DNA of 64,000 nucleotides from Chrysemys picta bellii (GCF_011386835.1 NC_088797.1:34224001-34288000), one strand, 5' to 3'; shown: positions 2,620 through 29,477, counted from the first letter of the stretch. Notes: generated by a model from the letters alone, not told the origin. A program made the numbers and translations.

Positions 2620-4320
2620 TCTCATACTGGGGAGAGATAGGGGAGATGAGTGTGTGTGACATGGAGTCTATATGCGGGGGGGGGGGGGTGTAGATGGGCA
2701 CCTATGTGTCTATGATATGGGGGGAGATGTGGGGTCTGTGTGTGTGATGTGGGGGAGATGGGGGGTCTGTATGTGTGATATGAGGGAGATGGGGGGTCTG
2801 TGTGTGTGATGGGGGAGATGGAGGGTCTATGTGTGTGATACAGGGGGTCTGTGTGTTTGATGTGGGGGAAATGGGGGGGGGTCTGTGTGTGATGTGGGGG
2901 GAGATGGAGGGTCTATGTGTGTGATACAGGGGGTCTGTGTGTTTCATGTGGGGGAGATGGCAGGTCTGTGTGTGTGATATGGGGGAGATGGAGGGTCTGG
3001 TGTGTGTGATGTGGGGGAGATGGGGTCTGTGTGTGATGTGGGGGAGATGGGGGTCTGTGTGTGTGATGTGGGGGGTGTCTATGTGTGTGATACAGGGGAT
3101 CTGTGTGTTTGATGTGGGGGAGATGGGGGGTCTGTGTGTGATGTGGGGGAGATGGGGTCTGTGTGTGATGGGGGGGATGGGGGGGTCTGTGTGTGATGTG
3201 GGGGGAGATGGAGGGTCTATGTATGTGATACAGGGGGTCTGTGTGTTTGATGTGGGGGAGATGGCGGGTATGTCTGTGATATGGGGGGTCTGTGTGTGTG
3301 ATATGGGGGAGATGGGGGGTCTGGTGTGTGTGATGAGGGGGAGATGGGGTCTGATGTGTGTGATGTGGGGTCTGTGTGTGATGTGGGGGGAGATGGGTGT
3401 ATGTGTGTGATGTGGGGGGTGTCTATGTGTGTGATACAGGGGGTCTGTGTGTTTGATGTGGGGGAGATGGGGGTCTGTGTGTGATGTGGGGGGAGATGGG
3501 GGTCTGTGTGTGTATGTGGGGGGTGTCTATGTGTGTGTGTGTGATACAGGGGGTCTGTGTGTTTGATGTGGGGGAGATGGGGAGTCTGTGTGTGATGTGG
3601 GGGGAGATGGGGGTCTGTGTGTGTGATGTGGGGGAGATGGGGTCTGTGTGTGATGGGGGGTCTATGTGTGTGATGTGGGGGGAAATGGGGGTCTGTGTTT
3701 GTGATATGAGGGAGATGGGGAGTCTGTGTGTGTGATGTGGGGGGAGATGGGGGTCTGTGTGTGTGATATGAGGGAGATGGGGAGTCTGTGTGTGTGATGA
3801 GGGGGAGATGGGGGGAATCTGTGTATGTGATATGGGGGAGATGGGGGGTCTGTGTGTGTGATGGGGGTCTGTGTGTGATGTGGGGGAGATGGGGTCTGTC
3901 TGTGTGATATGAGGGAGATGGCAGGTCTGTGTGTGTGATGTGAGGGAGATGGCGGGTCTGTGTCTGTGATGGGGGGGTCTGTGTGTGTGATGTGGGGGAG
4001 ATGGGGGTCTGTGTGTGATGTGGGGGGTTGTGTGTATGATACAGGGGGTCTGTGTGTGATGTGGGAAAGATGGGGGTCTGTGCGTGTGATGTGGGGGGAG
4101 ATGGGGGGTCTGTGTCTGTGATGGGGGTTCTGTGTGTGTGATGTGGGGGAGATGGGGTCTGTGTGTGTGATATGGGGGACATGGGGGTCTGTGTGTGATG
4201 TGGGGGGTCTGTATGTGTGATATGGGGGACATGGGGGTCCGTGTGTATGATACAGGGGGTCTGTGCATGTGATGTGGGAAAGATGGGGGTCTGTGCATGT
4301 GATATGGGGGAGATCGTGGA
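2620..4320. repeat. ~1.7-kb degenerate G/T-rich minisatellite (GTGTGATGTGGGGGAGATGGGGGTCTGT-like)
   Basis: Dozens of variant ~25-35-bp units, extreme strand asymmetry; explains the H/T/P-rich and V/C/M/G-rich ORFs. Confidence 0.95.
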
Positions 4321-6200: not shown

Positions 6201-6869
6201 GGAGCTCACACGCAGTCTCAGCCCCAGAGTGCTCACAATTTAAACAGTCCCATCTTTGAGCCCCCTGCTCCCTCCAAGGCTGCCCCTTTCTGGGGGCAAA
6301 TCTGAGCCCCCCACTGCTCCCCCAGTGGAAGGTGTGAACCCAGCTGGCGCTGAGCCGGATCCTGCACAGTCATAGCGCGAGGGCCCAGCCCCACTCGCAC
6401 CTCATTGGGTGGCAGCCTCCCTGCTCGAGTGAGACCAGGGCTCCCACACAGCCACTCGGCCGGGACCACGGAGCACAGGCGGCACTGCAGGTAGGGTCCT
6501 GGCAGCGGGAGGGGGCAGGACTCTTTGGGTTTGGATCCCTGCAGGGCATGTCTCCCTGAGGCTGGGTGTCTGTCCAGAGTCTCCGGGCATGGGGCTCTGG
6601 CGCTGGCGCCTGCGCTGGGGTCTGCACTGGAGCCCTGGGGTGGGGATCCTCCCTTCCTGGCACACAGGGCTGCATCAGGAGCAGAACCCGCTGGGGAAGT
6701 GGGGACCCCCTGCTGTCTCTGCCTCCCTTTCCCACTCGCAGGCTCAGGCATACTCAGCAGGGGGAGCTTTAAGGTGAGGGACCCCCCTCCACTGCACCCC
6801 AGGCTCATGGGCAAACTCACCCCCCTGGAGCCGCTGTCCTGCTGCAGGGAATGACAGGCAGGAGGGGAG

Positions 6870-7150
6870 GGGTTGAGGAATGGGACTGGGGGGGGACAGG
6901 GAGCAGGGTGGGGGGTGAGGAGTGGGACCGGAGGGGGACAGGGAGCGGGGTGGCGGGTGAGGAGTGGGACCGGAGGGGGACAGAGAGCGGGGTGGCGGGT
7001 GAGGAGTGGGACCGGAGGGGGACAGGGAACGGGGTGGCGGGTGAGGAGTGGGACCGAGGGGGGACAGGGAGCGGGGTGGGTGGTGAGGAGTGGGACTGGG
7101 GGGGGGGACAGGGAATGGGGTGAGGAGTGGGACTGGAGGGACAGGGAGCA
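6870..7150. repeat. 42-bp G-rich tandem repeat
   Basis: GTGAGGAGTGGGACC recurs at 6915, 6957, 6999, 7041. Confidence 0.9.
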
Positions 7151-7511
7151 GGGTGGGGAGCAGCTCCAGGGGGCATCGGCCGAGGGATGTTTCACACTGA
7201 GAGGCCAAGCCTTCCTAGCGGGTGTTGGGCCCTGGGGTTCAGAGTGCTGGGGTAGGCCCCCACTGTGGGGGAGGCGCTGGGAGAGAAATGACCTTGGGCC
7301 CAAGGGCAGCAAGCAGGAGATGGGGAGCATTCAGCCCCCACCCGGGGGCGGCCAAGCTGGCAGCTGGGGTCGGGGCTGTGCCCAGCCCCCTCAGAACCTC
7401 TAGCTCTCTCTAAGTTAATTGCTGCGTTTGCTGGTCTGGGTCCTTGCCCCCAGATCTCAGGCTCGGGCCCTGGGTGAGTTCCCTGCGCTGACCCCAGCTG
7501 CTGTGGATACC

Positions 7512-11139: not shown

Positions 11140-11340
11140 GATATTGGGCTGGGAAGGCGCGCGGCGAAGGCACCTGTTTTCCGTTTGTTCGTTCGCTCGC
11201 GCTGGGAGATAAGCAGCCGTCGGAGCCGCCGCGCTGACAGGAAGCGGGAGGGGGGGTCTCTGCGGGACCAGCACGATGTGCCACAACGCTGCACTGAACC
11301 CTCTGCAAACAGCCAGGGAACCGGGCGGGCGTCAGCCGAG
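11140..11340 (+). promoter_or_regulatory. Small CpG island; probable promoter/5' UTR exon of the ELM2-SANT gene
   Basis: CpG cluster ~0.6 kb upstream of the first coding exon acceptor (11874); GATA (AGATAAG) and ETS (CAGGAAG) motifs. Confidence 0.5.
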
Positions 11341-11879
11341 AGTCTGTGGGTACTGTGGGGGGAGGGGGGAAGCCTGGACTCATGGGTTCTATCCCCATCA
11401 CCAGGAGTGACTGGGGTCTAATGATTAGAATGGGGCGGGGGAGTTACTGGGAGCCCGGACTCCAGGGTTCCATCCTCAGCTCTGGGAGGGGAGTGGGGTC
11501 TAGTGGTTAGAGCTGGAGGGGCAGGACAGAGCACTGGAATGGAAACACGAGACCGGGATTCTATTCCCGGTTCAGCTCTTGGCTGGCTGGGTGACCCTGG
11601 ACAAGGCACTTCACTGCTCTTTGCCAGTTTCCCCCTCTGTAAAGTGGGGGCAATGACGGCTGGGTTCTCTTCCCAGCTCTGGGAGAGGAATGGGGTCTAA
11701 TGGTTAAAGCAGGAGGGTTGGAAGCCAGGACTCCTGGGCTCTATTCCCAGCTCCAGAAGAGCTGTGTCTCCAGCTGGCTAAAACAGGGTGGGAGGCTCAG
11801 AGTCAGGACCCCTTCGCTTAGAACCTGCTCTGTGGGGGTGTGTTGCCCCTTCATTTCTCTGGGTCTCTTTCAGCTCCGT

Positions 11880-14800
11880 ATGGGACTCGACACCACAGAG
11901 ATGGAGCCTGAGATGAGCACCTACGGCCCCTTCTATCCCCCTTGCAGCATGGAGGCCGGGGACCCTGTCAGCACGCAGGGGCCATATGCTGCCCTGGGCC
12001 AGCCCTGCTGGGGCCCTGAGGGGAACCCAGCCCAGCAGGGCCAGCAGCCCAGGGCAGCGGGGGGCCCCTATGGGCTCTGGCCCCAGAGGATTGAGCCAGC
12101 CCACCGCAGGCTGGACCCCTTTGCCCAAGCCTTCCCCAACCTGCCTTTCGGGAAGCCGTGGGTGCTGGGGACTCAGGCATCCAGGAGCCAGGGCTGCAGC
12201 CTGCAGGAGATAATGGCCCAGCCGCCCCCTATTGCCCCACAGGAGGGATACCCCCCTGGCAGCCCCCTGCTGCTGCAACTCCCTGGAGGCCAGCTGGAGG
12301 GGTCAGGGCCTCCTCTGTCCTACTGCAGCCTCCCAGAGAGGCAGGGGCAGGGCGGAGGTGGATACGGGCAGCAGCGCAAGGAGCCCCCGCTTTCGTGTCT
12401 ATACCAAGAGAACCAGTCTGCTAGCTACAGCCCCCCAGAAGGCTACCCGGGGCCCGGTGAGTGACAGGGGGGAAAGGGGGGTGGTTACGGGTGCTCTCAG
12501 CGGATGGTGGGGCCAAGATGGGGAAGGCCAGCTGAGGGGGCCCCCAGTTTTGGGAAGGTTATGGAACTAGGTGATGCTCTCAGGCGCTGTGGTGGGGGGA
12601 AGAGACAACTTGGGGGGGTGGGCTGTGGTATCCGGACAGAGGAGCATGGAGGGAGGACTCCAGCTTGGAGAGTCATGGGGTTGGGAGGCACCACTGGGAT
12701 ATGTGGGCCCAGGAGGATGCAGGGGTATGGACACAGGCAGATACGTGCCTGTGGGGGGGTGGAAGGGGGACGCCTGGCTCCTTGTGGGTTATGGGGTAGA
12801 AGGGGGAACTCATCTCAGGGGGATTATGGGGCCAACCCTGAGGGTTATGAGATATACTAGGGAGGGCCCCCAGCTTTGGGGGGAGGCTGCTGGGATGGGA
12901 GGGGGGAACTCTGGCTCTTTGCTGTCACAGCCTAACCTCCTCTCCCTGTGTGTCAGCTCCCCAGGGGCTTGCAGGCCCTGAGACGTACGCTGGGCTCCTG
13001 GGCCCCCCTGATTGGCTCCCTGATGCCGCCCCCAGCCTCTGCTGCTACCAGGTGGGTTGGTATGAGGAGGGTGGTGGGAAAATGGGCGGTGCCCAGTCCC
13101 AGGGCCATGCTGCCGAGTAGGGGCGGGGGTCGGGAGATTCCCCCAAGATTAATGGCAGAGGCAGTGGGGTCTAGTGGTTAGAGCGGGGCTGGTGCTGAGA
13201 GCCAGGACTCTGGGGTTCTCTCCCTGGCTGTGGGTTCTGACTCCCTGCACTGAGCCTGTCATCCCCTGCAGGACACTGAGCGCTACTGCAAGGGGCTGGA
13301 GTTTCTCCCTGCTGGTTTTGCCCCATGGCCGGGGGTCTCCCCTGGGGAGCCAGATTCAGAGGTCGCTGCTGCCAGGCTAGGGCATGAGCAGAGCCCCCCA
13401 CTGGCAGGCCGCACTGCCACCCCCCAGGTGAGAGTGGGACGCTGGGGCTGGGGGAGTGGGGCCTGCCTCACCTGAGCCCTCAGGGAAGCATGGGTGGGGC
13501 AATGGAGTCAGGGAAGTCCCCCCCACCCTAGGGAGCCCTCCCACCCCCCCAATACCCAGCCACTTGTCCCAATCACAGGCCGCAATCTTGCACCCAGATG
13601 GGCTCCTGATCACTCATTGGAGGGGAGGGAGGGCTGAGGACACTGGGGAGGAAGATAGCCAGGGAAGGAGTGGTTGGGGGGATGTCTTGATGGTTAGCTG
13701 GGTGTTTCCCAGCATGGGGGGGGAGGGGGGAGTTGCTAGAGTCCTGCCCCCCCCCCCCCGGGACCCAGCAGGGGTGCCAGCACTGGGGAGGCCACGATGC
13801 CCCATTCCCCTCATTGCTCCCCCATGGGATAGGCCCCTGCAGCCTCTGACCACCTTTCCTCCCCAGGTTTCTGGGAGCTCCTTGGCCTCCAGTTATCGAG
13901 GCACTCCTTATTGGAGCCGGATGCACCGGGCCAGGGCCCCCCCGCACTACACACCACCCCCCATGCTCAACCCGCTGCGCCGAGGCACTGGGCTGTTTGC
14001 TGAGCTGAGCGCCTCGCTAGGCGGTAAGTGCCCACCTTGGCCACCTTCCAACGCAGGCGGGGGGGCTTGATTGGTTGCTTGGGAGCCAGTACTCCCGGGT
14101 TCTACTCCCAGATGCGGCTGAGTGTGGCCAAGGGGCAGGGATGTGAGGGAGGGTCTCTCCCTCCACTGAGCCACGTGAACTGGGTCCCTGGGTGTGGAGT
14201 CCATGAAGGTTTGTTGGGTGGGTACAGAGCCACATGGGGGGATCCTGCAGGGCCCTGGAAGATGGGGAGGAGGTCAGGAGTTCTGTCTCAGGGCAAGCTG
14301 GGGAACTGTGTCTGTGCCAGGGGCCTTCACTGCTGGACTCTCCCCTCCACAGGTGGCAGCCCCGACCCCCTCCAGCACCTGGACACCCCGTAAGTCCTGT
14401 CTTTTGGGGTGGAGGGAAATTAGGCTACAGCCCCTTGGGCAGGTGTGGCAAAGGGGATGGGCCCCAGGGAGGGAACTTTGAGCCAGGGATCTCCTGGCGG
14501 CGGGGGGAATCCCCAGGCTGGGGAGCATGAGTGGTGGGAAATGGCTGGTCTGGGAGGGGCAGTAACAGGTCGGGCATGTGCCTGCGGTTGAGGCTCCCTC
14601 ACCTGCCCCTTCCCCTGCAGACAGATAAACGTGGGCCCCGCATTCCAGCCGGCACTGCCAGTGCTGCGGGACCCACACCTGGCCCAGCTGGACCCCCCAC
14701 AGGCTGAACTGGCCTGGAGGCCCTGGCCAGGGCTGGAGCAGGATGCAGAGACCCAGCGCCAAGGTGAGGGGTAGCACTGGGGATTATCACGGGGAGGAGC

Positions 14801-17049
14801 TGGGGCACCCACAGGCGGGGGCAGGGAGAGGTGGGGCAGGCCCATATGTCCCTTACAATAGGGGGAGGGGAGGAGAAGCAGGACAAGCCCACCCCCAGTG
14901 GCTCAGTCTGCATGGTCCAGTCAGTCCCCAGCCTCTTAGGGGAAGTGGAGGGGTCCCATGGGGTGGGGGTTCCCAAGGCCCATCTGATGCCTGCTGTCTG
15001 GGTGCAGTGTGGGGAGTGGAGAGGTCCCATGGGGTGGGGGTTCCCAGGGCCCATCTGATTGCTGCTGTCTGGGTGCAGTGAGGGGGGTGGAGGGATCTCA
15101 CTGGCCCATCTGATGGCTGCTCTCTGGTTGCAGTGGAGACACTGCTGGACGTGGCTTGCTCCAGCGCCCTCCCCGGGGGTGGCACCAATCAGGAGCTGGC
15201 ATTGCACTGCCTGTGCCAGGCTGGCGGGAATGTCATGGTAAGAGACCACCCTCACCCCATGGCCTGGCCCTTGGTAAGTAGCAGTGTCTGACCCGAGGCC
15301 AGGATGGTTCTGGCAGGGGAGCGCCCTGGGGAGGGAAAGGGTCTGGGGCAGCTTCCCCCTCTCAGCTTTACTCCCCCCTCAGGTTGCCTTGGAGACTCTG
15401 TTGCTGCGAACCCCAGTGTGGCCCAAATGTCACCCTCTGGCCAGTTACCATTACACAGGTAAAGGGGGGGGCAGGCAAGTGGCATGACCAGGGTAGCTAG
15501 CAGAGGCTGGGGGCCAGTGGGGGCAGGGCCAGGGGAAGAAGGGGAACAGGGGTAGCAGCAGCTGGGCAGGACAGGATGGAAGAGGAGTGGGGGCAGGATT
15601 GGGAGCCATGGCAGGATGAGGGGGTAGGGCTGTGGGGGACAGGAGGTTGGGGGCAAGGCTGTGAGGGAGTAGGGCAGTGGGGGTCAGGAGGATGGCGGGA
15701 GGGCTGTGAGGGGGTAGGGCTGTAGGGGACAGGAGGTTGGGGGCGGGGCTGTGAGGGGGCAGTGGAACAATTTACATAGTGGGGGTGCTGAGAGCCATTG
15801 AAGCAAACGCTAAACCCTGTATATGATGGAAACCACTTCAAGCCAGCCGCACCCCCAGTTCCAGCCCCTGGGGCTGTGAGCAGCAGGGAGGGGGGACAGA
15901 AACATTGGGTGGGGCAGGGTCTATGCGGGGGGTGGGATGGGGCCAGGCTGTGGTGGGAAGGAGGGTGTGGAAGGGCTATGAGGGGCGTGGAGCAGCATAC
16001 CCTGTCTCAGGTTCCTCTCCCTCCCCCAGGCAGTGATGTGTGGAGTACCCACGAGCGCCGCCTCTTCTCCAAAGCCTTCGCCCTGCACAGGAAGGACTTT
16101 GCCCAGATCCAACGTGCGGTGAGAGCAACACTAGCCCCCTCTCCACCCCTCACTTCCAACCACCTTCTGCGGGGGGAACGGACACCCATCTACTCCAGCC
16201 CCAGCCTCTTCCAGCAGGGGGAGCTGTAGGAGTGGGGTGGGAGCGCTGGCTGCAGGGGGATGGATTTCCGGCTAATCCAGGCCTGGCCTCTCCCAGCAGG
16301 GCTGGGGGATGCTAGCTGACCGAGTTCTCCCTGCCCCCCAGGTGCCCTCCAAGCGGCTGGCCCAGTGCGTGGAGTTCTATTACTTGCACAAGAGCCGGCT
16401 GCGGCGCAGTCACAAACGAAGTGGTGCCGGGTCAGAGTCGGGCGCCATCGTAGGCAGGGCCGGCCCCGGGCAGGTATGTGAGACCTCAGGGACAGGGATG
16501 GGGGGAGCCCCTCCCCAGACAAGGAAGCAGCCTGGGGGAGGTCTGTGATGAGGTCTATGATGTCCTCCTCTTTCTCTCTCTCTCAGCCCCCACCTACCCC
16601 AGAGCTCCCTCAGGACTCCTCCCCCGGCTCCAGCTTCCCCTGCAAACGTTGCGGCAAGTAAGTGGCTTTAACTTTTGGGCTCCACACCCACCAGAGTGGG
16701 GGGCGGGGGGCAGGCTCCAAGTGGGAGTGTTCCCCAGGCCTCCTGCTTGCTGGGGGAGAAGCAGCTCGGCTGAAGGGCCCCCGCAGATGCCTCACTAACC
16801 CCTGCCCCCCACTCTGTCCCCAGGACGTTCTACAAGATCAAGAGCCGAAATGCCCACATGAAGATCCATCGGCAGCAGGACGACTGGGGTGGGCAGGGGG
16901 GAATGCTGGGACCTGGCACTCTCCCTGCCCCTCATGTGGGGTGCCCCCCCTGGGCCAACACAGAGCCAGCCGAGCCCGTTGCTGAGGCCCTGGCCTGCCC
17001 CGGGCTGGGGCTGCTCTATGGGAGGGACATGGAGCAGCTCTTCATGTGA
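11880..17049 (+). CDS. TRERF1/ZNF541/MIDEAS-family ELM2-SANT-C2H2 protein, ~620 aa (paralog identity unresolved)
   Basis: 12 GT-AG exons in phase: 11880-12456, 12957-13051, 13272-13427, 13867-14023, 14353-14389, 14621-14763, 15134-15237, 15383-15458, 16030-16118, 16342-16473, 16587-16657, 16824-17049 (1863 nt). Motifs: [17 protein letters not shown]; ELM2 [10 protein letters not shown]...[20 protein letters not shown]; [21 protein letters not shown]...QCVEFYY; C2H2 [23 protein letters not shown]. Confidence 0.9.
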
Positions 17050-17342
17050 TGGGGGCCAGGACCCCTCCCTTGGCCTGGCATGGAGAGCCCCACCTTCCAA
17101 GAGTTTGCCCCACTGGGGGCCAAGGGGCTGTGGTCTCCTCATGGAGAGCACAAGGTTATAGGAGCCCCCTACCATGAGGGCAGGACCTGCCCCTACAAGA
17201 GACTCCATCCAGGCTCAGCCTGGCCCCTGCACTGCCCCCTATGCCTGGGCAGCTGCCTGTAGGGCATAACCACTGGGACATGTGGGACAGCGGCAGCGGG
17301 CTGAGGGGCAGAGAGACAGCAGGGATAGTGGGGGGTAGGCGC

Positions 17343-17941: not shown

Positions 17942-19038
17942 TCACACCTCGATGCTTGGGTCAGAGCCCAGGCCCTGCTTCTGCAGCAGCTCCTCCTGCT
18001 TCATTTTGGGCTTCTCCGACCGTGTGTGCCAGACCAGAACCTGCAATGGAGGAGTGCAGGACAGAGGTGGGGTCCAGAGAGATCCCCCCAGACCGTGCCC
18101 CTCCCCCAACCAGCACCCCCAGCCAGTCAGCACAGCTGGGGGACTGAAGACACCTGGGACCATCCTGCTTAGAGGCAAAATTTCACATTCCCCACTCCCA
18201 GCACCATGGATAGAACCCAGGAGTCCTGACTCCCAGTCCCCCTCCTCACCTTGGTGCAGTTGTCAGCTCGAGGCTCCAGCTCTTCGATGGAGACCAGTGA
18301 CTGCAGCAGGCTGCTCTCCAGGTAGCCACGCTCAGCCAGCAAGTCGAACCGGGCCTCGCGATTGGCCAGCAGCAGCTGCAGAGCAATAGCGAAGCCAGCC
18401 ATGTCCATGGGGAAGGGCCGGTTGGGCTTCCAGGCTGTGTAGAAGCCCACCACCCTGCCCTTCTCCACCAGGGGGCGCTCGAAGCGCAGGCCACCCACGA
18501 GCCCCACGGGCCAAACTGAGACACGCTTGGTGGAGCGGATCTGTGGGGGAGAGAGAGGGGGGGTGTGTCAGCAGCAGAAAGAGACCCCCACGTTGGGGAG
18601 GTGACACAAATGCATCCCTGCGCTCCCCACCCCAATCCCCGCCTCCAGCACCCTGCCACCCACTCCCTTCCCCGTCACCCCACCCCCTGCCACCCACTCC
18701 CTTCCCCATCACCCCAGCCCCTGCCTCCAGCACCCTGCCACCCACTCCCTTCCCCATCATCCCAGCCCCTGCCTCCAGCACCCTGCCGCCCACTCCCTTC
18801 CCCATCACCCCACCCCCTGCCTCCAGCACCCTGCCGCCCTCCCCAGCATCCAGCAAACTGTGGCCCACCCCCTTCTCCGTCACCCTACCACCATGCCTCC
18901 AGCGCCCTGCCGCCCCCACCTCCCCATCAGCCCACCCCCTGCCTCCGGCACCCTGCTATGACAAAGTGAGAATTTTTTGTAATATTTTTATGACACGTCT
19001 AACTGTCTCCATTTCCCCTGTACGGTGCATTGTTACCC

Positions 19039-19070
<32 letters not shown>

Positions 19071-22000
19071 CGGGAGGTCGCTTGTCTCGGTCTCAATCCC
19101 CATACTAGTGGCACACCTCAAAAGACACCAGACAAATCCAATTGTCTGGACATTGCTCCCTAGCAATCAGTGACCCAGAAAGCTATAGACTTCCCCGCCC
19201 CTCAGCAGGGGGGAGGGGGGCTGAGCAACATTCTCCCAGGTTGAGATCCAAGGACTGGAGAGATGTGAGCAGGGGTGGAGGGGCAAGAGTGGGTGGCTGG
19301 AGGCAGCCGGGGCTTTCACCTGGAGTCTGACAGAGGAGATCAGACGGAGGGTCAGTGAGAGCTTGAACCAAGGAGCTCACTACAGCTTGGCTGGGCCCTG
19401 GGCGAACCAGACTGGACTGCGCTTTAACGTCTGTTCTCTGTGCTAACCTAAGGACTCGTATGGTGTGTTCCAGAGGACTAATAAACCCAAGTGTTTTGAC
19501 AACACTGTGTGAGTGTCACTGCCAATGCTTGGCGAGGTGCACTAATCCCTGGGGAGTGCACCAGTCTCCACTGGGGGTCTGTCTCAGTTGGACTCGCTGA
19601 ATGGAGCTCACAATGTGAAGCAGCGTGCCGGAGGCCTAGAGGTCCAGTTTCACAAGGCGGTGAAGCCATGTGTCTTACACGGCCTCCAGGGGGTCTGACA
19701 CACTGAAGGGGTTCCTGCTAGAGACTCTTCCCAAACTGACACCGTATCACCGATCTTGTGGATCCATGACAGGTGGTGGTAGAGGTGGGATGCTGAATGC
19801 ACCGGTAGCATTTTGTAATAAATGACTTGCAGCAGTAAAACAAGGATAGTTAAAGGAAACAGCAAAAAAATGGTCTGTAGCCAGCTCCCTAAGACAGACG
19901 ATGCAAACATGTGCAGGCAAAGAGGGTTAAGCTTTGGGAAGCTCAACAAGGTGCAGCTGCACGGCTGGAGAAGGATGACCGGTCCAAGAAGCAGGTTCCA
20001 GATCCAGGCGGGGTTCCAAGAGGGTGTGAGAGTGACAGAGACAGCAATAGGGCATCCTTGAGACCCGTCTCCCTGTACAGCAGTGGTCTTTTGTGACTTG
20101 GTTCCCCATTGATAGATCTGAAGTGGTGGGATTTGGCGCTGAGAGTGAAGATGCTAGTAGATTGTTCCCTCTCAGTTTCCAAGGAGGAAGAACAGCGGAA
20201 GAACCCGGAGAAGGAGTGAAAGCAGGAACCAGATATGGAGAAGCAGAGGGACAAGTGGGGAAAGATGCTGATTCCGCAGGGAACGTAGATCCCAGTTTAC
20301 GGAGTGGGGATATTGATGCCTGTCTCACTGCCTTTGAAAAGGCTTGTGATTTGAACCAGGTTGACCCTGCAGACTGGTTCCGCTGTTTCACCCCTTACTC
20401 AGGCCCACCGCTATAGAGGCGTTCAGCCACATGGATGGAGCTGACACTGGGGACTATGAACAGTTCAGAAAGACTCTATGGCTTACGTCTGAATTGACAT
20501 CTGGGGCTTATAGGGAGGTTTCGGGGTGTGCAAAAGACCCAGGGTGTGACCTACATGGAAACCACCACCCTGATGGGACAATATCTCCACAAGTGGGGTA
20601 AGAGTGCAGGGACACTATACGGGAGGATTGGTATAACCTGGGTGGGTTGGAGGAACTCTATGAGATCTGTCCTCATGAACTTAAAATGTGGCTAGTGCAC
20701 AGGGAACTGAAGGATCTGCATAGCACAGGTCAGTTGGCCAATGATTTTGTGGACAGTAGGTGTGGGTATGAAGAGAGACCCAAAGGGAACTGGGCTAAGC
20801 ATGGGTCCTGGGAAAGGGAACCAGTGGAGGCACCCCAGGAGTGGGACTCAGGTAAACCCATGCGGGCAGGCTTCTTCCAAGGGAGATGTAATATCTGTAG
20901 GAAAACAGGACAGAAGTGAGCACTATGGCCAAGGCTTCATGAAATAAGGTTTGCTACTTCACTGTGCCCAACCAAGAAGGCCGCATTGTAGCTCAGGCGC
21001 TGAGTGTGAGTCACACAGCCAGCTCTTTGGGGGCACCGGGAGTGGTGAAAGATGGACTCCTGATCCAGGCACTGTACACATGTCCTGTGGTACTCTGCTG
21101 GGCTCAGACTCATGGGATCCCCAGTGGGAGCAGAAGGTGCTGGTTACTGGGAAGACGTTCCTGGGGTAGAGAGATTCTGGGACAGAGAGCCCTTGTCAGA
21201 GCACATGTGGTACAACCCATCACATGCTGAAAGGCTGTGTCAGCTGGATTAAGGTTCCTTTTGTCTAGCTCTGTGCAGACCCAGGAGGGCTTGGGGTGGC
21301 TGGTCTCCAAGATATCAGCTCTGACATCCTTTTGGGGACTGACTGTATCACCTTAAGACAAAATTCTGCCCGTTTCTGTACCAGCCCGAACCACCCGAGC
21401 CGACAGGCTCAGACTGGAGGCGTCAGTGAAAATGCAAATAGCTTGGCTGGCAGGGAGCAGGAGGGTTTTCCCCCCTTGCTTGCAACAGAAAGGAATGGCT
21501 GTTAGCTCAGGACACCTTTCAGTCTGTAACCATACAGCCAGATCTGAGTGGGGCAGGGGAACGGCCTCAGCCAGCCGCACACGGGAGATGTGAGTCACAC
21601 TGGCTCAGGTGAAACTTCCCTGACGTCTGATGCTGTGACCAAGGGAGCAAGCTCCCGGCCTGCCCTCGCTGGGAAAGTAGAGGCAGAGCCGAGCCCTGTG
21701 GTATCTGAAACCCCAGCTGAGTGTGGGCAGACACAGGCAGGGCAGGGGGATGGCCAAACAGGTTTGCCCTGGCCAGGGGGAGAGAAACCCCAGTGAAGAG
21801 GCAGCTTCTGGTAACAGACACCTGATCAGAGGGTGGCCCTGACCACATGCATTCTCTTAGCCAAGAGAGCCTGAATCACGGCCCACCAGGAGCAGGGGAT
21901 GAGAGGACTGTCCTGGGGGTGAAGGCAACAGACTGATCCCAAGTAGGGAGATGGGCTCCTTGCATCACACAGCGCTGGGGTTGAGACACACCAATGTGAA

Positions 22001-25000
22001 GGAGCCCCTTGCATGCCTGCCTCACCAGAGCCTGGGACACCACAGCCCCAGGGATATGGATGGGCCAAGACCAAATGATCCAGGAGTCACTTCTTACCCC
22101 AACCTAGGCTAAGGACACCCCCGGCTGCAGCCAAGCTGACACTTGGAGGACCGGGGCTCATTGCCCTCCTCACTCCCAGCCAATGAGGGGGTCCAGAGAG
22201 TGGCTGGATCTCAGCCCAGTTTCAAACTCAAGGTTTTGGGGTATAAAAGGGCGAGGGGCTGCACCCTGCTGGTGCCATCTAACAGACCAGACCTAAGGGA
22301 GGATGGGAAAGTGCTCGGAATGGCGTATTCAAACTATAAGTTGGACTGAATGGCAACTGTGCTATAAGAATCTCGAGAGTGCCGGGTGGGACAGCTACTA
22401 AGGAGAAGGGGAAGATGCTGTAGTATCTCTGGATAACATTTGTGGGTTCGAACTTCCGCAGGTGACTGGTTTAAGTGACCCTGCTCAGCTTGGTCTCAAA
22501 GAGGGAAGAGATGTGACAAAATGGGAATTTTTGGTAATATTTTTATGAAGCTTATGTGTGCCTCAGTTTCCCCTACATGCTACATTGTTACCCAGTGGTG
22601 GTGTTGGGAGGGGGGCAGGGCAGGACTGTTTGGTCTTGGGGCTGGCTAGGAGACAGAGGTGTGGGTGTCACCTAACTGTCTGGGCCTTAATCCCCATAGA
22701 AGTGGAGCCTGTAAAAAGACAATGGCAAATCCAATTGCCCGGACATTGATACCTGGCAACCAAGTGGCCCAGAAAACTATAGACTTCCCTGCCTTCCAAC
22801 ATGGGGGCTGGTCTCAGGTCCAGACTGAAGAGATGTGAGAGGAGGGAGAAGAGCAGGAGTCAGTTGGGGAGTCCGAGGAATCAGACAGAGGGTCAGAGAC
22901 AGCTTGAACCAAGGGGCTCACTATAGCTCGGCTGGGCTCTGGGCTAACCAGATTGGACTGTGCTTTGATGTGTTCTCTGTGCTAACCTAAGGACTGCCTA
23001 TGGTGTGTTCCAGAGGAGAACACTGTGTGAGTGTCACTGAAATGCTTGGCAAGGTGCACTGATCCCTGGGGAGTGTACCAGTCTCCATCGGGGTGTCTCA
23101 GTTGGACTCGCTGAACAAAGCTCATGGTGTGAAGCAGGAGTGCTGGAGGCCCTGAGGAACAGGTTCAGGAGGAAAGTGAAGCCGTATGGCTCACGCTTCC
23201 TCCAGGGTGAGAACCTAGGGGGACTGTCACAATGAAGCGGTTCCTCCTAGAGACTGTTCCAGAGCTGGGCCCATAGCACCGATCACGTGGATCTGTGACA
23301 CCTGCCTCCCCCACTTCCCCAGCACCCCCAGCCTGCCTCCAGTGACCTGCCACCCCCCACACACACATTACATCTATGCTGTCCCAGTGCCCCACTCCTT
23401 CCCCCCGAAGCACACAGCACCCACCTCATCGAAGAGGCGCAGGCTGTAGGTGTTGTCGTCGTCGGCGAAGTAGACCACGCCCTCCTCACTGAGCTCCCGG
23501 TTCTCCCGCAGCCACTGCAGGGCCAGGTTACGCTGCTCCACGCCACGGGGCTTCAGCCAGTTGGGGTCGCTCTCCTTGCGCTTGTGCTCCTTGGGTGTCT
23601 CCGTGTGCAGATGGGTGAAGCGCAGGCCGCTCTGGGCCAGCAGCTCCGACACCAGCTGGGTCTTCACTGGGGAGTCCTCTACCACGATCCAGTGGAAGTT
23701 CTTCACGTGCAGGAAGGTCTGTGAGATGCGCACCAGCTCAGCCTTCTGCACCAGCCTGCGGGAGAGGAGAAACAACAGAGAGATGCACCATCTCAGCTTG
23801 GCGGGCGGGGTGGGGGGGGTGGGGGAAGACAATAAAGAAATATGCCAGCTGGGGAGGAAGGGGGAAATAATAGAGAAATGCACCAGCTCAGCCTCGGGAG
23901 GAGGGGGAACAATAGAAATGGGGCAGCTCAGCCTAGAGGGAAGGGGAAAACAATAGAGGAACATACCAACTTGGCCTGGAGAACAATAAAGGGGGAGAAG
24001 CCAGAGAGAAGCACACCAGCTGGAGAAGGTGGTAGTGGGAGAGAAACCAGGGACATGCAGCAGCCTTCAGGGAAAGGGGTGGTGATGAGGCAGACTGGGG
24101 TGGGCAAGGGGGAGCACGCAGTGGAGTTAGACGGTTCCTCCCAACAGAGATGAAGCAGTCGGGTTCCAAAGAGCACCTCTTGGGTATCGAAATATCCATT
24201 TCTGGAGTTGCCAGTGCTTGGCATTAGAGAAATCTCAGCTCCTCCGGCACAAATGGGTTTAATACCAACTCTGTCTGCTGGAGGGATATTCTTCCCCTCA
24301 GCCATGTCTTACCCCAGCAAGGCAACAGTAACTGGGGGTATGGAAACCCACACTCATGATCTCATCTGACAAGGATGGGAAGAGGCAGGCCAGTTAGATC
24401 CTGGGAAATATGGCTTAGTAGCTTCTGCAGAGGTTGCTTCCCTGGGTGCTTGGGAGTGACTGGAGTGTTTCCATAAACACTGACTGGTGCTGGGCAGGGG
24501 GAGCAGGGCCCCTTTCAGCCCCCTGACTGCTAACACTGCAGCAGAGCCAGCTGGCAGGTTCCATGGGAGCCACAGGGCCCTAACCTGCTACCTGCAGGTG
24601 CCTGCTCTCCTTGCGGCTGGGTTTCAGGCTGCTGAATCCAGCCCTGGAGTAATTTCTGTTCCTAGCACATGGAGACTCTTCCCATCCCCAGCAGAGCCTC
24701 CCATCTCCCCAAGCCCAGCCTATTCCCAGCATGGCCAAGCCCCCTTCAGCTCCCCCCAGCAGGAGCTCCCACCTGGCATAGGTGGGTGTGATGGCGTAGA
24801 TGATGGGCAGTGCCTGTCCCTCCAGCTCTGGGCCCTTTCCTCGTGCCTGCAGCCGCTTCACCTCACTCAGCAGCTGGGAGATCTTCTTGTCCTTGCCATG
24901 CATGAGGTCGCTGGCTGATCGCAGGTGCTGGGAGCAGTCGCAGGGCTGCCCTGGAGCCAGGCAGAGGAGGCAGACAGGTCAGAGAAGGGAGACCCTCTGG

Positions 25001-25739
25001 GTTGCAGCTAGCCCACCCCTCCCTAGGGGAAGACTGGGCCCAACACCCTGGTCCCCAGGGTGTTCCCTGCCTGACTTGAAATCCGTGGAGTAACGGTGTT
25101 CCCAGCCCTTCCTCATCTCCCTACTGGGGAGCAGCGGGGCTCCCAGCCAGATCCATTCCCATCAGGGAGCTGCGTGGCTCCCAGCCTCTCCGCTGGGGGC
25201 GATTCCCTAGCTGGACCCAGCCACGGTCAGGGAGCAACCAGGCTCCCATCCCTTCTCCCAAACCAGCATGCTCCCTCCTAACCCACCGTCTGACCCTCGA
25301 GTATTCCTATGACTCCCCGAGTTTCCTGAGACAGGATCTGTGCTCTTCCCTCCAGTCCAATCCCTCACTCCGCACCTCTGGCTGAACTCCTGGCTCTTTA
25401 CGCAGATATCCAGTGGAGCTGGGGCAGGGGCTAGCATCCAGTAGGACAGGGGCTGGCACTGGTACCCAGACAGGCTCCCCTCTCTGTCTGTCTGTCTCAC
25501 TAGGGGGAGAGAGGATGTTCAGGGGCCAGTGACTGCTGGCACCGTGCTCTGGTGGGGATCGAGAACAGCTACTGGCCCAACAGCGCTGTCTGGGCCCACG
25601 AACCTGCTCTGAGTTCAGCCCCAGCACCGCAGCTGCTACGCTCAGCCCAGCACTCACCCAGCTGCAGCAACGCGTACATGAGCCCAATCACCGACACTAG
25701 GAAGTAAATGACAAACACATTCTTCAGCTTCACCTTCAT
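17942..25739 (-). CDS. B3GAT3: Galactosylgalactosylxylosylprotein 3-beta-glucuronosyltransferase 3 (GlcAT-I), 326 aa
   Basis: Exons 25658-25739, 24773-24950, 23425-23755, 18250-18540, 17942-18040 (981 nt). N-term [18 protein letters not shown]43 motifs TPTYAR and [12 protein letters not shown]-term [12 protein letters not shown]; synteny with GANAB. Confidence 0.97.
18640..18956. repeat. C-rich ~42-45-bp tandem repeat
   Basis: CCTGCCTCCAGCACCCTGCCACCCACTCCCTTCCCCATCAC units; a remnant continues at 23301-23360 on the far side of the LTR element. Confidence 0.85.
18957..23300 (+). mobile_element. Non-autonomous gypsy (Gmr1/SCAN-like) LTR retrotransposon, ~4.3 kb, decayed
   Basis: 5' LTR 18957-19771, 3' LTR 22512-23300 (T[G/A]TGACAAA...GTGGATC..TGACA); 5-bp TSD CCTGC; PBS 19774-19791; polypurine tract before 22512; broken gag ([24 protein letters not shown]) and protease DSG remnant near 21170; no RT/integrase seen. 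Confidence 0.85.
19774..19791 (+). other. Primer-binding site, tRNA-Leu-like
   Basis: TGGTGGTAGAGGTGGGAT vs TGGTGGCAGCGGTGGGAT (complement of the tRNA-Leu AAG/TAG 3' end as I recall it), 16/18, 2 nt after the LTR end. Confidence 0.75.
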
Positions 25740-26109: not shown

Positions 26110-28700
26110 AAAGGGGGACATGGCACCATCCCTGGGGAAATCACACCCCGGGAATGGGGAGGAGGATGGAGGATGTGCCACCGTCCCCGGGGATGGGGAG
26201 GGTGTGACACCATCCCCAGGGAGATTGCGCCACAGGGATGGGGGGAAAACGTGGCATTGTCCCTGGGAGATTGCACCACAGGGATTGGGGGGGACGTGGC
26301 ATCATCCCTGAGGAGATCACACCACGGGGATGTGGTGGGGGGATATGGCACCATTCCTGGGGAGATCGCGCTATGGGAATGGGAGGGACGTGCCACCATC
26401 CCTGGGGAGATCACGCCACAGGGATGGAGTGGACAGGGGTGTGATGGAGTGGGAATTTTCTGTAATATTTTGTATGAATAGTGTGTGCACTCCTCAGTTT
26501 CCCCTGCATGCTGCATTAAGTAGGTGCTGGTTGTTTACTCTCTGCAGAGACCCAGGTGTTACTGATGCTGTCAGGGGGGTGGGACCCATGTCCCTGGAGG
26601 GTCCAAGATGACAATGGCCACTCCATTGCCCAGACATTTGGTACCTAGCAACTAAGGACCACGGATGGCCCTCCCCTCCGCAGGAAGCTAGCCATGCTTG
26701 TGGGAGAACAGGAACATAGGACTGAGGAGGGGCCAGGTGAATGGAAGCTGGAGACTCTCCTGAACTGGGACAAAAGAGGGGTCAGAATAAGGCTCTGGGC
26801 TGGCCAAGATGGACCATGCGGTAACTTTCTGTTCTCTGTGCTAAGCTAAGGACTAACAAACCCTTCTATTTTACAATGCTGGCTGAGTGCCCCCACAGAT
26901 GTCTGAGGTGGGGCATTGCTCCCTAAGATTGTACAAGTCTCCTTCAGGAGGTCCATCCCAGTTGGACTGGCTGAACGGAGCTCACGGTGTGAAGCAAAGT
27001 GCTGATGGACCAGAGGTCTAGCCTAGGAGGTGGTGAAGCCAAGTGGCTTATCCTGGAAGAAGAGTTGGGTCTGGCATGCTGCAGGAGTTTCCTCACAGAG
27101 GCAGTTCCAAAGCTTGGGCCATAGAACCAGACCTGTGGATCCAGGCCAGGAGGCTGTGGTCCCATCCCTGGGAAGACTGAACTATGGGACAGGGAGGTGG
27201 AGATATGGCACTGTCCCTGGGAGATGGCACCATGGAGACATGTGGGGTTGGACATGGGATATGGCACTGTCACGGGGAGATCACACCACGGGGATGGGGG
27301 GCAGGGGACATGGCACCGTCCTGGGGACATCGCAGCATGGGGATGGAGGGGGAGAGGGAACATGGCACCGTCCCAGGGAGATCCCATCAGAGGGATGGGG
27401 AGGGGACACGGCCCTGTTCCGGGGTGATCGCACCAGAGGGATGGGGGGGAGGGGCAGGGGACACGGCACTGCCGCAAGGAGATCGCACCAGGAGAATGGG
27501 GGGAGAGGGGGGACAGGGGACACGGCACCGTCCCGGGGAGATCACACCAGAGGGATGGGGACGGGGCAGGGGACACAGACTGTCATGGGGAGATCGCACC
27601 AGGGGGATGGGGGGGAGGACAGGGGACACGGCACTGTCCCGGGGAGATTGCATGCGGGGGGTGGGGGGCAGGGGACACGGCATTGTCCTGGGGAGATCGC
27701 AAGAGGGAGATGGGGGGGGAAAGGGACACGGCACTGTCCCGGGAGATCGCAGCACGGGGACAGAGTGGGGCAGGGGACATGGCACCATCCCGGGGAGATC
27801 CCACCAGGGGCATTGGGGGGGGAGATCGCACCAGGAGGATGGGAGAGGGGCAGGGGACGGGCAGGGGACACGGCACTGTCCCGGGAGATCGCACCAGGGC
27901 GATGGAGGGGACAGGGGACACGGCACTGTCCCGGGAGATCGCACCGGGGCGATGGGGGGCACAGGGGACACGGCACCGGCCCGGGGAGATCGCACGAGGG
28001 GGAGGGGGCGGGGGCACAGGGGACACGGCACCGTCCCGGGGAGATCGCACGAGGGAGAGGGGACGGGGGCACAGGGGACACGGCACCGTCCCGGGGAGAT
28101 CGCACGAGGGAGAGGGGACGGGGGCACAGGGGACACGGCACCGTCCCGGGGAGATCGCACGAGGGAGAGGGGACGGGGGCACAGGGGACACGGCACCGTC
28201 CCGGGGAGATCGCACGAGGGAGAGGGGACGGGGGCACAGGGGACACGGCACCGTCCCGGGGAGATCGCACGAGGGAGAGGGGACGGGGGCACAGGGGACA
28301 CGGCACCGTCCCGGGGAGATCGCACGAGGGGGAGGGGACGGGGGCACAGGGGACACGGCACCGTCCCGGGGAGATCGCACGAGGGGGAGGGGGGCGGGGG
28401 CACAGGGGACACGGCACCGTCCCGGGGAGATCGCACGAGGGAGAGGGGACGGGGGCACAGGGGACACGGCACCGTCCCAGGGAGATCGCACGAGGGAGAG
28501 GGGGCGGGGGCACAGGGGACACGCTACCGTCCCGGGGAGATCGCACGAGGGGGAGGGGACGGGGGCACAGGGGACACGGCACCGTCCCGGGGAGATCGCA
28601 CGAGGGGGAGGGGACGGGGGCACAGGGGACACGGCACCATCTCGGGAGATCGCAGCACCGGGACGGAGGGAGGCAGGGGACACGGCACAGTCCCGGGGAG
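26110..28700. repeat. G/CpG-rich minisatellite (55-bp unit in its homogeneous part), interrupted by the solo LTR
   Basis: GGGGAGATCGCACGAGGGAGAGGGGACGGGGGCACAGGGGACACGGCACCGTCCC, period 55 (28081 vs 28136); near-perfect ~27960-28640; degenerate copies 26110-26439 and 27200-27950. Confidence 0.95.
26440..27148 (+). mobile_element. Solo LTR related to the element at 18957-23300
   Basis: Shared start (TGTGATGGAGTGGGAATTTTCTGTAATATTTT), internal motifs (CCTCAGTTTCCCCT, GCTAAGCTAAGGACT, CAGTTGGACT) and end (GTGGATCC..CA); TSD not clean. Confidence 0.75.
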
Positions 28701-28797
28701 ATTGCACCACTGGAGCAGGAACACGTTGCTATGGAGACCGCGCCGCGGGGGAGGGAACGTGCTGCCGTTGCCACGGAGACCGCGGCTGGTTACTCAC

Positions 28798-29100
28798 CGC
28801 GCCGGCCCCGGGGGGTGGGGAGCGGGTCAGCAGGCGGGTCTCAGCGCCCTGCAGCCTCCTCCGCACCCGGCACCGGCATTTCCGGTCCGGCCCGCTCTCT
28901 GGTCCGGGTCCCGTAGGTCTCCTTCGTCCTCCGCCCCCTGCAACTCACTTCCGGTCCGATCCCTTCAGCAGCTCCCCCACTTCCTGTCCTTATTGCAGGA
29001 GCCCGGACTCCTGGGTTCTAAGTTCCGGCCAATCACCGGCCCCGACAGAGAAGCGGTTCCGCGTCCCTCTCCACCGAGTGGACCGAGCCCCCCGCGGGAG
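28798..29100 (-). promoter_or_regulatory. B3GAT3 CpG promoter and non-coding first exon
   Basis: Donor GCG|gtgagta at 28797; CCGGAAGT/CCGGAAAT ETS motifs; matching acceptor ccccag|GGGCC at 25755, 16 nt upstream of the ATG. Confidence 0.7.
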
Positions 29101-29477
29101 GGGAACAGGCACCGCCCAGCCAGCGAGAATGGCCGGCGGCTCTGGCCTTTGCCAGCTCCGGGGCAGTGACAGAAGGGTCCTGAGCTGTCAAGCCCAGGAG
29201 TAGCCAGAGCCAGCATGATAGCGGGGGAGGGGTTTCTGAGGCACCAGTCGGGGGCAGAGCTGGGGTGATGGGGGCAGGAAGGGGTCCTGAGGCACCAGCC
29301 GGAGGCAGGGGGCGGGGGGTGTAGAGCTGGGGTGATGGGGTGGTAGGGGGAGGAAGAGTCTCGGAGGCACAGGTGGCAGGGGATAGAGCCAACCAGCGTT
29401 GGGACAATTGCAGTTTCTGAGCCACCACACCCAGCCCCAGCAGATACACCCAGAACATCACTTTTTTTTCCTCTCTT

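Follow-up and report, generated by a model that had tools for sequence, protein, structure and literature searches.

Because it is written from the human genome, the literature on the mitotic deacetylase complex (MiDAC) gives its scaffold MIDEAS two homologues, TRERF1 and ZNF541 (PMC7319964, PMC12647621), and a gene of the same family found beside B3GAT3 in the turtle Chrysemys picta bellii raises the question of which member it is. We analyzed this gene within a window of 64,000 nucleotides (nt) (GCF_011386835.1 NC_088797.1:34224001-34288000), where it occupies positions 11880-17049 on the plus strand, counted from the first letter of the window. The gene corresponds to RefSeq LOC112060431, labelled "uncharacterized protein", which we matched through a protein search with the exon encoding its ELM2 domain (XP_065407230.1). 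Its gene structure, expression, conservation, phylogeny, synteny, and motif conservation make it probable that LOC112060431 is a functional, transcribed member of a fourth and ancient paralogue group in the MIDEAS/TRERF1/ZNF541 family (SAEG-1 in nematodes), one that predates the split of cartilaginous and bony vertebrates and has stood beside B3GAT3 since at least the bony-vertebrate ancestor. It is thus an unnamed member of a known family, already annotated under placeholder names, and not a new kind of system.

Those placeholder names are scattered across the databases. The 620-amino-acid (aa) product is 99.2% identical, without gaps, to isoform X3 of Malaclemys LOC128841123 (620 aa), and further models in its 90% cluster, from Chelonia, Mauremys, Natator, Dermochelys, Caretta, Lepidochelys, and Eretmochelys, measure 595-702 aa and are variously called "uncharacterized", "TRERF1-like", or "ZNF541-like". 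Zebrafish-type relatives bear the name si:dkey-19b23.10, and our literature search found no paper mentioning either that name or LOC112060431. The search with the 47-aa ELM2 exon returned only 18 matches, several of which were single-exon fragments or low-complexity noise.

The initial annotation had described an intact gene of 12 exons and about 620 aa, and both the splice and phase check and the RNA evidence confirmed it. Spliced together in phase, twelve exons with GT-AG borders give 1863 nt (620 codons plus TGA) with no frameshift and no internal stop. Coding exon 1 (11874..12456; acceptor at 11874, coding sequence from the ATG at 11880) encodes a P/G/Q-rich N-terminus and is linked to exon 2 (12957..13051), and exon 2 to exon 3 (13272..13427), by the RNA junctions 12456/12957 and 13051/13272. 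Exon 4 (13867..14023) contains the YTPPPML loop (13945-14001), the counterpart of the auto-inhibitory loop at MIDEAS 653-670, and is followed by a linker of 37 nt in exon 5 (14353..14389), which like exon 3 is defined by its splice sites and RNA junctions. The ELM2 domain begins in exon 6 (14621..14763) with QINVGPAFQ (Pfam ELM2 E = 1.5e-5; human MIDEAS E = 5.5e-10), continues with the helices of exon 7 (15134..15237), and is joined to the SANT domain by a helix encoded in exon 8 (15383..15458). Exon 9 (16030..16118) supplies the first half of SANT and exon 10 (16342..16473) its third helix, while the C2H2 finger is divided between exon 11 (16587..16657), with its first half (FPCKRCG), and exon 12 (16824..17049), which adds the second half, the C-terminal tail, and the stop TGA at 17047-17049. 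All of these exons lie on the plus strand.

Contigs from public sequencing runs, aligned to 11700-17300, provided an independent view of this structure. A single contig of 3785 nt from run X18 (organism E, a close relative) crosses all 11 introns exactly at the predicted GT..AG borders, and run X27 (organism C) contains nine of the 11 junctions. Since only RNA yields contigs that skip introns, LOC112060431 is transcribed and spliced in at least two species; runs X12 and X17 contributed only unspliced contigs of low depth over the gene and are uninformative on splicing. Upstream of the acceptor at 11874 the X18 contig carries a further 121 nt, of which the final 30 match 11316-11345 exactly before a GT, defining a 5' non-coding exon at 11225..11345 (+) whose 3' end is exact (donor GT at 11346) and whose 5' end is approximate, being taken from those 121 nt. 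The frame through this exon has a stop 17 codons ahead of the ATG at 11880 and no ATG in between, so that ATG is the start and the 620-aa product is the one supported by RNA. RefSeq isoform X1 (680 aa) starts instead at an ATG at 11700 inside a repeat, which the X18 contig does not support because the position falls in the intron that the contig skips. Isoform X2 (XP_065407230.1, 636 aa) omits exon 10 and thereby deletes the third SANT helix with its FYY..K residues; this exon is present in the spliced RNA contigs of both X18 and X27.

At the other end, the 3' untranslated region (UTR) runs from 17050 to about 18400 (+), its far end uncertain, with RNA contigs extending about 1.1-1.5 kb beyond 17300. 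These contigs reach into B3GAT3, which converges on LOC112060431 and whose annotated 3' end lies at about 17942; this reflects either overlapping 3' UTRs or an unstranded assembly that fused two convergent transcripts. Interspersed repeats at 11700-11886, 13150-13380, and 15760-15850, in introns and the 5' region, reach hundreds to thousands of RNA-contig depth units with many chimeric joints; we take these repeats to be similar to short interspersed nuclear elements.

The encoded protein had been described as having a Q/P/G-rich N-terminus, the YTPPPML motif, a complete ELM2-SANT, and one terminal C2H2 finger, all of which were borne out by composition, Pfam, and alignments. The N-terminal 295 aa are rich in P/G/L/A/Q/S, the YTPPPML motif lies within residues 303-312, and the whole loop spans residues 303-320. 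Pfam run on separate exons missed the SANT domain and the finger because both are split by introns, and we therefore scanned the full-length Malaclemys orthologue, which gave ELM2 at 343-398, Myb/SANT at 452-494 with 23.5 bits (cutoff 24.4), and a weak C2H2 at 539-561; no N-terminal C2H2 fingers were found in this full-length scan. An orthologue 99% identical to our model (P0022) matched the human MIDEAS structures 9r4i_B (E = 2.7e-59) and 6z2j_F (E = 8.7e-56), its residues 341-499 aligning to 159 residues of the MIDEAS chain, whose solved ELM2-SANT module covers residues 717-887, with zero gaps and the upstream YTPPPML stretch aligning as well. CoREST, MTA3, and NCoR/SMRT structures matched the orthologue over SANT only, with E-values of 1e-7 or weaker. 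In an AlphaFold2 (AF2) model of residues 296-565, the ELM2 helices, SANT, and finger are predicted with confidence, the last as a beta-beta-alpha fold with a predicted local distance difference test score of 81-87, and the extended parts are disordered, as expected without HDAC; the closest Protein Data Bank (PDB) folds to it are MIDEAS chains of MiDAC, at 50-52% identity. The mixture of ZNF541-like and TRERF1-like ELM2-SANT residues proposed from the sequence can be seen in our alignment, in which all the quoted strings appear. The product is also much shorter than its relatives, as had been noted: 620 aa against about 1280-1370 aa for ZNF541 and the about 1060-1110 aa seen for TRERF1.

To place the gene in its family, we assembled tree rows from three protein searches together with a contaminant contig (L006) bearing MIDEAS exons. 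Among these rows TRERF1 ranges from sharks to human, ZNF541 covers mammals and birds, and MIDEAS is represented by a mammal-like source, a frog, a sturgeon, and teleosts; a nematode homologue serves as outgroup, and 44 relatives of the turtle gene complete the set. The mammal-like MIDEAS row was rebuilt from the exons of L006, which is non-human, with X at the joins. A careful maximum-likelihood (ML) tree of 83 rows and 331 columns (LG+C20+F+G4) resolved four clades, namely TRERF1 (94/82), ZNF541 (99/100), MIDEAS, and the 44 sequences that include LOC112060431 (99/97), with MIDEAS and ZNF541 grouped at 96/97. Within the LOC112060431 clade, a chondrichthyan subclade (100/99) separates from an osteichthyan subclade (95/86) that broadly tracks the species tree. 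A profile search with amniote ZNF541 returned 120 rows, almost all from mammals, and was the source of kiwi and ostrich ZNF541; the four clades persisted in an enlarged tree to which kiwi, ostrich, marsupial, and human full-length ZNF541 had been added. The Denticeps ZNF541 (ELM2 only, verified by synteny) was unstable near MIDEAS in the 83-row tree and was left out of the enlarged one. In an approximately unbiased (AU) test, forcing the sauropsid members together with amniote ZNF541 was worse by 58 log-likelihood units (p = 4.9e-6).

Single species that carry several family members point the same way. The crane has a LOC112060431 orthologue (P0027), ZNF541 (P0163), and TRERF1 (P0109) together, Scleropages has an orthologue with TRERF1 and MIDEAS, Synaphobranchus has an orthologue with MIDEAS, and both an orthologue and TRERF1 were found in five sharks or rays and in one caecilian (Rhinatrema). 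LOC112060431 is not a TRERF1 orthologue, given its separate clade and the co-occurrence of TRERF1 in sharks, Rhinatrema, Scleropages, and birds; nor is it a MIDEAS orthologue, as MIDEAS forms its own clade and both genes are present in Scleropages and Synaphobranchus. The clade, the AU test, and this co-occurrence together uphold the claim of the initial annotation that the turtle gene is a fourth paralogue.

Some facts weigh against this placement and have to be set beside it. The trees take their ZNF541, TRERF1, and MIDEAS rows from species other than Chrysemys picta; the root is weak (91/80 in the 83-row tree and 56 in the enlarged tree) and is set by one long nematode branch; and in both tree and alignment the ELM2-SANT of the LOC112060431 clade evolves faster than that of TRERF1. 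With ZNF541 and TRERF1 represented by other species in the comparison, it could be asked whether the gene is simply the turtle orthologue of one of them, relocated beside B3GAT3 and shortened. NCBI does name several clade members "zinc finger protein 541-like" or "transcriptional-regulating factor 1(-like)", and ELM2-SANT identity to TRERF1, ZNF541, and MIDEAS is about equal, at 53-56% in the alignment. We nevertheless regard this origin as extremely unlikely, as it has to contend with the separate shark-containing clade, with the AU result, and with the genomic neighborhoods.

Crane, alligator, and kiwi share the order EML - orthologue - B3GAT3 - GANAB, with the EML gene ending 1.5-2 kb upstream of the orthologue. 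The bowfin orthologue also adjoins B3GAT3, and in all four species the two genes stand tail-to-tail. By comparison, the Denticeps ZNF541 has an EHD gene on one side and a zf-BED gene and NAPA on the other, and kiwi ZNF541 likewise adjoins a zf-BED gene and NAPA. A position at the ZNF541 locus can be rejected for LOC112060431, as its neighbors in the window are B3GAT3 and INTS5 and not NAPA, zf-BED, or EHD. A single kiwi assembly (GCA_036417845.1) holds the orthologue beside B3GAT3 on one chromosome (CM071243.1) and ZNF541 by NAPA on another (CM071245.1), and this disposes of a relocated ZNF541, while the presence of TRERF1 alongside in crane, sharks, caecilian, and Scleropages does not fit a relocated TRERF1. 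The suggested neighborhood thus holds from bowfin to birds, and the shark-containing clade, the kiwi loci, and the spliced RNA rule out the two alternatives raised at the outset, a relocated ZNF541 or TRERF1 orthologue and an unexpressed recent duplicate. One shark orthologue (P0049) is a 55-kb gene with no neighbor within 10 kb.

We made some side observations on ZNF541 and on models named after it. The zf-BED/hAT-dimerization gene between ZNF541 and NAPA encodes 754 aa in Denticeps and 675 aa in kiwi, and has the look of a transposase that was domesticated long ago and has since been maintained in synteny. Passerine ZNF541-like proteins (P0215, P0221, P0223, and P0156) are only 280-563 aa long and share a common stem of about 1.0 substitutions per site, far exceeding that of other birds; one of them is misnamed "REST corepressor 2-like". 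The band-tailed pigeon (Patagioenas fasciata; P0011, P0137, and P0139) has near-identical "ZNF541-like" models of 131 aa that consist of an ELM2-type exon only and are spread over several contigs and many accessions, suggesting a fragment dispersed in multiple copies.

If LOC112060431 belongs to a fourth paralogue group, the next question is how old that group is and how it arose. Both the LOC112060431 and TRERF1 clades contain chondrichthyans, whereas the sampling of MIDEAS and ZNF541 was confined to bony vertebrates, and on the sequence tree the split of the LOC112060431 clade from the other three is placed before the divergence of sharks and bony vertebrates. The ELM2-SANT intron positions of LOC112060431 equal those of MIDEAS (on L006) and of kiwi ZNF541 (L010), and these common positions point to duplication of genomic DNA rather than retroposition. 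As a separate observation on introns, both halves of the C2H2 finger in the kiwi orthologue (L011:12834-13025) fall in one unbroken tblastn segment, so the intron that splits the turtle finger (16658-16823) seems to be missing there.

The four clades may have arisen by the two rounds of genome duplication (2R). In the human genome, the families KLC1-4, EML1-3, EHD1/2, PRPH2/ROM1, and BICRA/BICRAL link 14q, 11q12-13, 19q13.3, and 6p21.1. Neighbor families also recur in our comparison, with EML beside LOC112060431 orthologues and EHD and NAPA beside ZNF541. The nematode homologue falls outside all four vertebrate clades as a single sequence, and the unrooted topology, ((MIDEAS, ZNF541), TRERF1, LOC112060431 clade), agrees with a 2+2 pattern provided that the internal branch carries the root. 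Rooted with the nematode, however, the tree is asymmetric, with the LOC112060431 clade branching first, then TRERF1, then MIDEAS with ZNF541, and an older or separate segmental duplication would draw on this order, whose support is modest. Under such a duplication LOC112060431 would still be an ancient fourth paralogue but no strict ohnologue. This origin also gains from the scope of the comparison, which took in local neighbors and trees of jawed vertebrates rooted on a nematode, with ZNF541 and MIDEAS from bony vertebrates. Set against the recurring neighbors and the position of the nematode protein, we find it rather unlikely.

Members of the clade were found widely among jawed vertebrates: in cartilaginous fishes (chimaera, sharks, and rays), in ray-finned fishes (bichir, sturgeon, paddlefish, gar, bowfin, osteoglossomorphs, eels, and otophysans including Danio), and in sarcopterygians (coelacanth, lungfish, caecilians, salamanders, tuatara, turtles, alligator, and birds). 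In the protein searches and the tree, the clade contained nothing from mammals, squamates, or frogs, which is absence from match lists and not proof of loss; in the tree the frog match falls in MIDEAS and the lizard match in TRERF1. The proposal that the gene is missing from human, and from mammals generally, agrees with two protein searches whose match lists held no mammalian member. Loss of one ohnologue in mammals is common.

The same comparisons bear on whether the turtle gene still works. A copy that is transcribed but no longer serves as an HDAC scaffold might be expected from its reduced length compared with the paralogues, its missing clamp stretch and N-terminal fingers, the long sauropsid branches, and RefSeq isoform X2, in which the third SANT helix is lost. 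Against organism E we counted four synonymous and six non-synonymous changes, which taken as a bare count would also suit decay, but none of the six non-synonymous changes falls in ELM2-SANT. Over ELM2-SANT and the finger, the ratio of non-synonymous to synonymous substitution rates (dN/dS) between turtle and alligator, crane, or kiwi is 0.26-0.31, at dS of 0.8-1.0. An intact open reading frame (ORF) has been retained by more than 40 species across more than 400 million years, and the loop, ELM2, SANT, and finger columns show little or no variation among 34 family members. With exon 10 included in the RNA contigs, a decaying or non-functional copy seems very unlikely, and a working gene remains the reading that we prefer.

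What such a gene may do can be set against the known structures of MIDEAS. The ELM2-SANT of MIDEAS wraps HDAC1 and docks on the DNTTIP1 dimer through the short first helix of ELM2; the SANT domain contributes to an inositol-phosphate site, K839 and K843 reach a neighboring inositol phosphate, and K849, Y874, and V878 form the interface of the MiDAC tetramer (PMC7319964). MIDEAS residues 653-670 (PYTPPPILSPVREGSGLY) constitute an auto-inhibitory loop over the HDAC1 active site, in which I659 occupies the channel and Y654 stacks on P656 and P721, while residues 631-637 clamp the loop (PMC12647621). In the turtle protein, the loop Tyr, Thr, and prolines are kept, the channel residue is Met in place of Ile659, as in TRERF1 and ZNF541, and the equivalent of Pro721 is retained in "TPQINVG". 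Across the clade, the loop has the signature H-Y...ML-N/D-P (HYTP.PMLNP). The RKDF and FYY..K residues of SANT are kept, with R and K as the aligned equivalents of K839 and K843; which SANT residues form the inositol-phosphate site is in part our presumption from MTA1 and SMRT structures. The C-terminal finger (FPCxxC...F.KIKSR.AHMK.H) is retained as well, as judged by a weak Pfam score, the alignment, invariant columns, and the AF2 model.

By analogy with MIDEAS, the ELM2-SANT of the LOC112060431 protein would wrap a class I deacetylase (HDAC1/2), and its SANT domain would help build the inositol-phosphate site. The conserved YTPPPML loop would then cover the HDAC active site as an auto-inhibitory element, and the C-terminal C2H2 finger together with the disordered N-terminus would provide targeting. 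Judging from the sequence, we think it likely that the protein is an HDAC1/2 scaffold with an auto-inhibitory loop, for which binding to HDAC1/2 and to DNTTIP1 is predicted. For the use of DNTTIP1 and MiDAC-type tetramerization the balance is roughly even.

Some features of the clade tell against so close a parallel with MIDEAS. The RPEPLxIP clamp stretch (MIDEAS 631-637) is absent from the turtle protein and from every clade member inspected; it was seen in MIDEAS, TRERF1, and the nematode protein, in variant form in bird ZNF541, and is unclear in human ZNF541 isoform X9. At the tetramer interface, the turtle has H for Y874, L for V878, and R for K849. The Thr of YTP is replaced by Arg in the bird and alligator proteins. 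Because Y874 and V878 differ, a MiDAC-like tetramer is uncertain, and the clade could have settled on a different and simpler complex in which HDAC1/2 is recruited without DNTTIP1 or a MiDAC-type tetramer. The changed interface and the absent clamp would suit such a complex, but ELM2 is gaplessly collinear with that of MIDEAS, including the short first helix that contacts DNTTIP1, an MTA1-type dimerization helix is absent, as in MIDEAS, and the K839/K843 positions keep basic residues as R and K. We treat the simpler complex as possible without favoring it over a MIDEAS-like scaffold.

Taken further, the MIDEAS-like reading would equip jawed vertebrates other than mammals, among them turtles, zebrafish, and chicken-type birds, with a fourth deacetylase complex of the MiDAC type that is clamp-less, differently regulated, and perhaps more active at baseline, a suggestion we make tentatively. 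Regulation would differ because the loop lacks its stabilizing clamp. If this is true, mammals (and apparently squamates and frogs) would have given up an entire class I HDAC complex along with the gene, and the complement of such complexes would differ between mammals and other vertebrates. A fourth family member of the age of jawed vertebrates, present in the main non-mammalian model organisms, is of practical importance as well: in zebrafish or chicken, the LOC112060431 orthologue may buffer the knock-out of mideas, trerf1, or znf541. The clade also offers a natural version of the newly described auto-inhibitory system that has kept the loop but not the clamp, and could help to dissect the mechanism, while LOC112060431 adds one marker for the 11q12-13 / 19q13.3 / 14q / 6p21 paralogy.

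The remainder of the window offers few further genes. B3GAT3, an annotated gene with a Glyco_transf_43 domain (Pfam E = 8e-38 on 23374-23964), lies at 17942..25739 on the minus strand, tail-to-tail with LOC112060431. INTS5 (46433-49342, minus strand) is an intact single-exon ORF of 969 aa with INTS5_N (E = 4e-82) and INTS5_C (E = 5e-281), and the order from B3GAT3 to INTS5 is presumably that of human 11q12.3. We located neither ROM1 nor EML3 in the window, and no protein-coding gene is annotated in the 10 kb upstream of LOC112060431 (1700-11700). Large ORFs within 1-11.8 kb had no Pfam match, and tblastx of this region against the crane and alligator loci gave low-complexity noise only. G-rich minisatellites occur at 2720-4314 (unit of 30-31 bp, about 50 copies), 6853-7158 (42 bp, about 7 copies), and 27207-28707 (52-55 bp, about 27 copies), and generate long stop-free ORFs in several frames on both strands, such as 27184-29169 (661 aa) and 6233-7330 (365 aa), again with no Pfam match. 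We accordingly rejected the large upstream ORFs as genes and regard them as minisatellite artefacts.

Among the closest known systems is MIDEAS (also ELMSAN1), the MiDAC scaffold of PDB entries 6z2j, 6z2k, and 9r4i. The two proteins are alike in a gapless ELM2-SANT over 159 residues at about 53% identity, in the YTPPP(I/M)L loop and the Pro that pairs with its Tyr, in FYY..K and RKDF, in the C-terminal C2H2 finger, and in intron positions. Unlike MIDEAS, the turtle gene belongs to a separate clade, lacks the 631-637 clamp, has changed residues at Y874 and V878, encodes 620 rather than 1045 aa, and sits beside B3GAT3 instead of at the MIDEAS locus; the MIDEAS loop, P-YTPPPIL-S-P, also differs from the turtle loop in its flanks and channel residue.

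TRERF1 (TReP-132) is about 56% identical over ELM2-SANT, has KCHPLA.YHY in common with the turtle protein, and carries a terminal finger that is 73% identical, but it has extra C2H2 fingers (PF13894, PF00096), a length of about 1060-1200 aa, and very slow evolution, and it co-exists with a LOC112060431 orthologue in sharks, caecilian, Scleropages, and birds. ZNF541 (SHIP1/ZFP541), the testis MiDAC-like scaffold, is about 54% identical and has YTGSDVW in common, yet forms its own 99/100 clade, bears N-terminal fingers, extends to about 1280-1370 aa, and lies beside a zf-BED gene and NAPA. The true counterparts of the turtle gene are si:dkey-19b23.10 and the RefSeq models called TRERF1-like, ZNF541-like, or uncharacterized in sharks, fishes, amphibians, and sauropsids, which fall in the same clade and are its orthologues. 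These share with the turtle protein the HYTP.PMLNP signature and a finger tail starting GK(M/T), although the fish and shark members are longer, at 780-960 aa.

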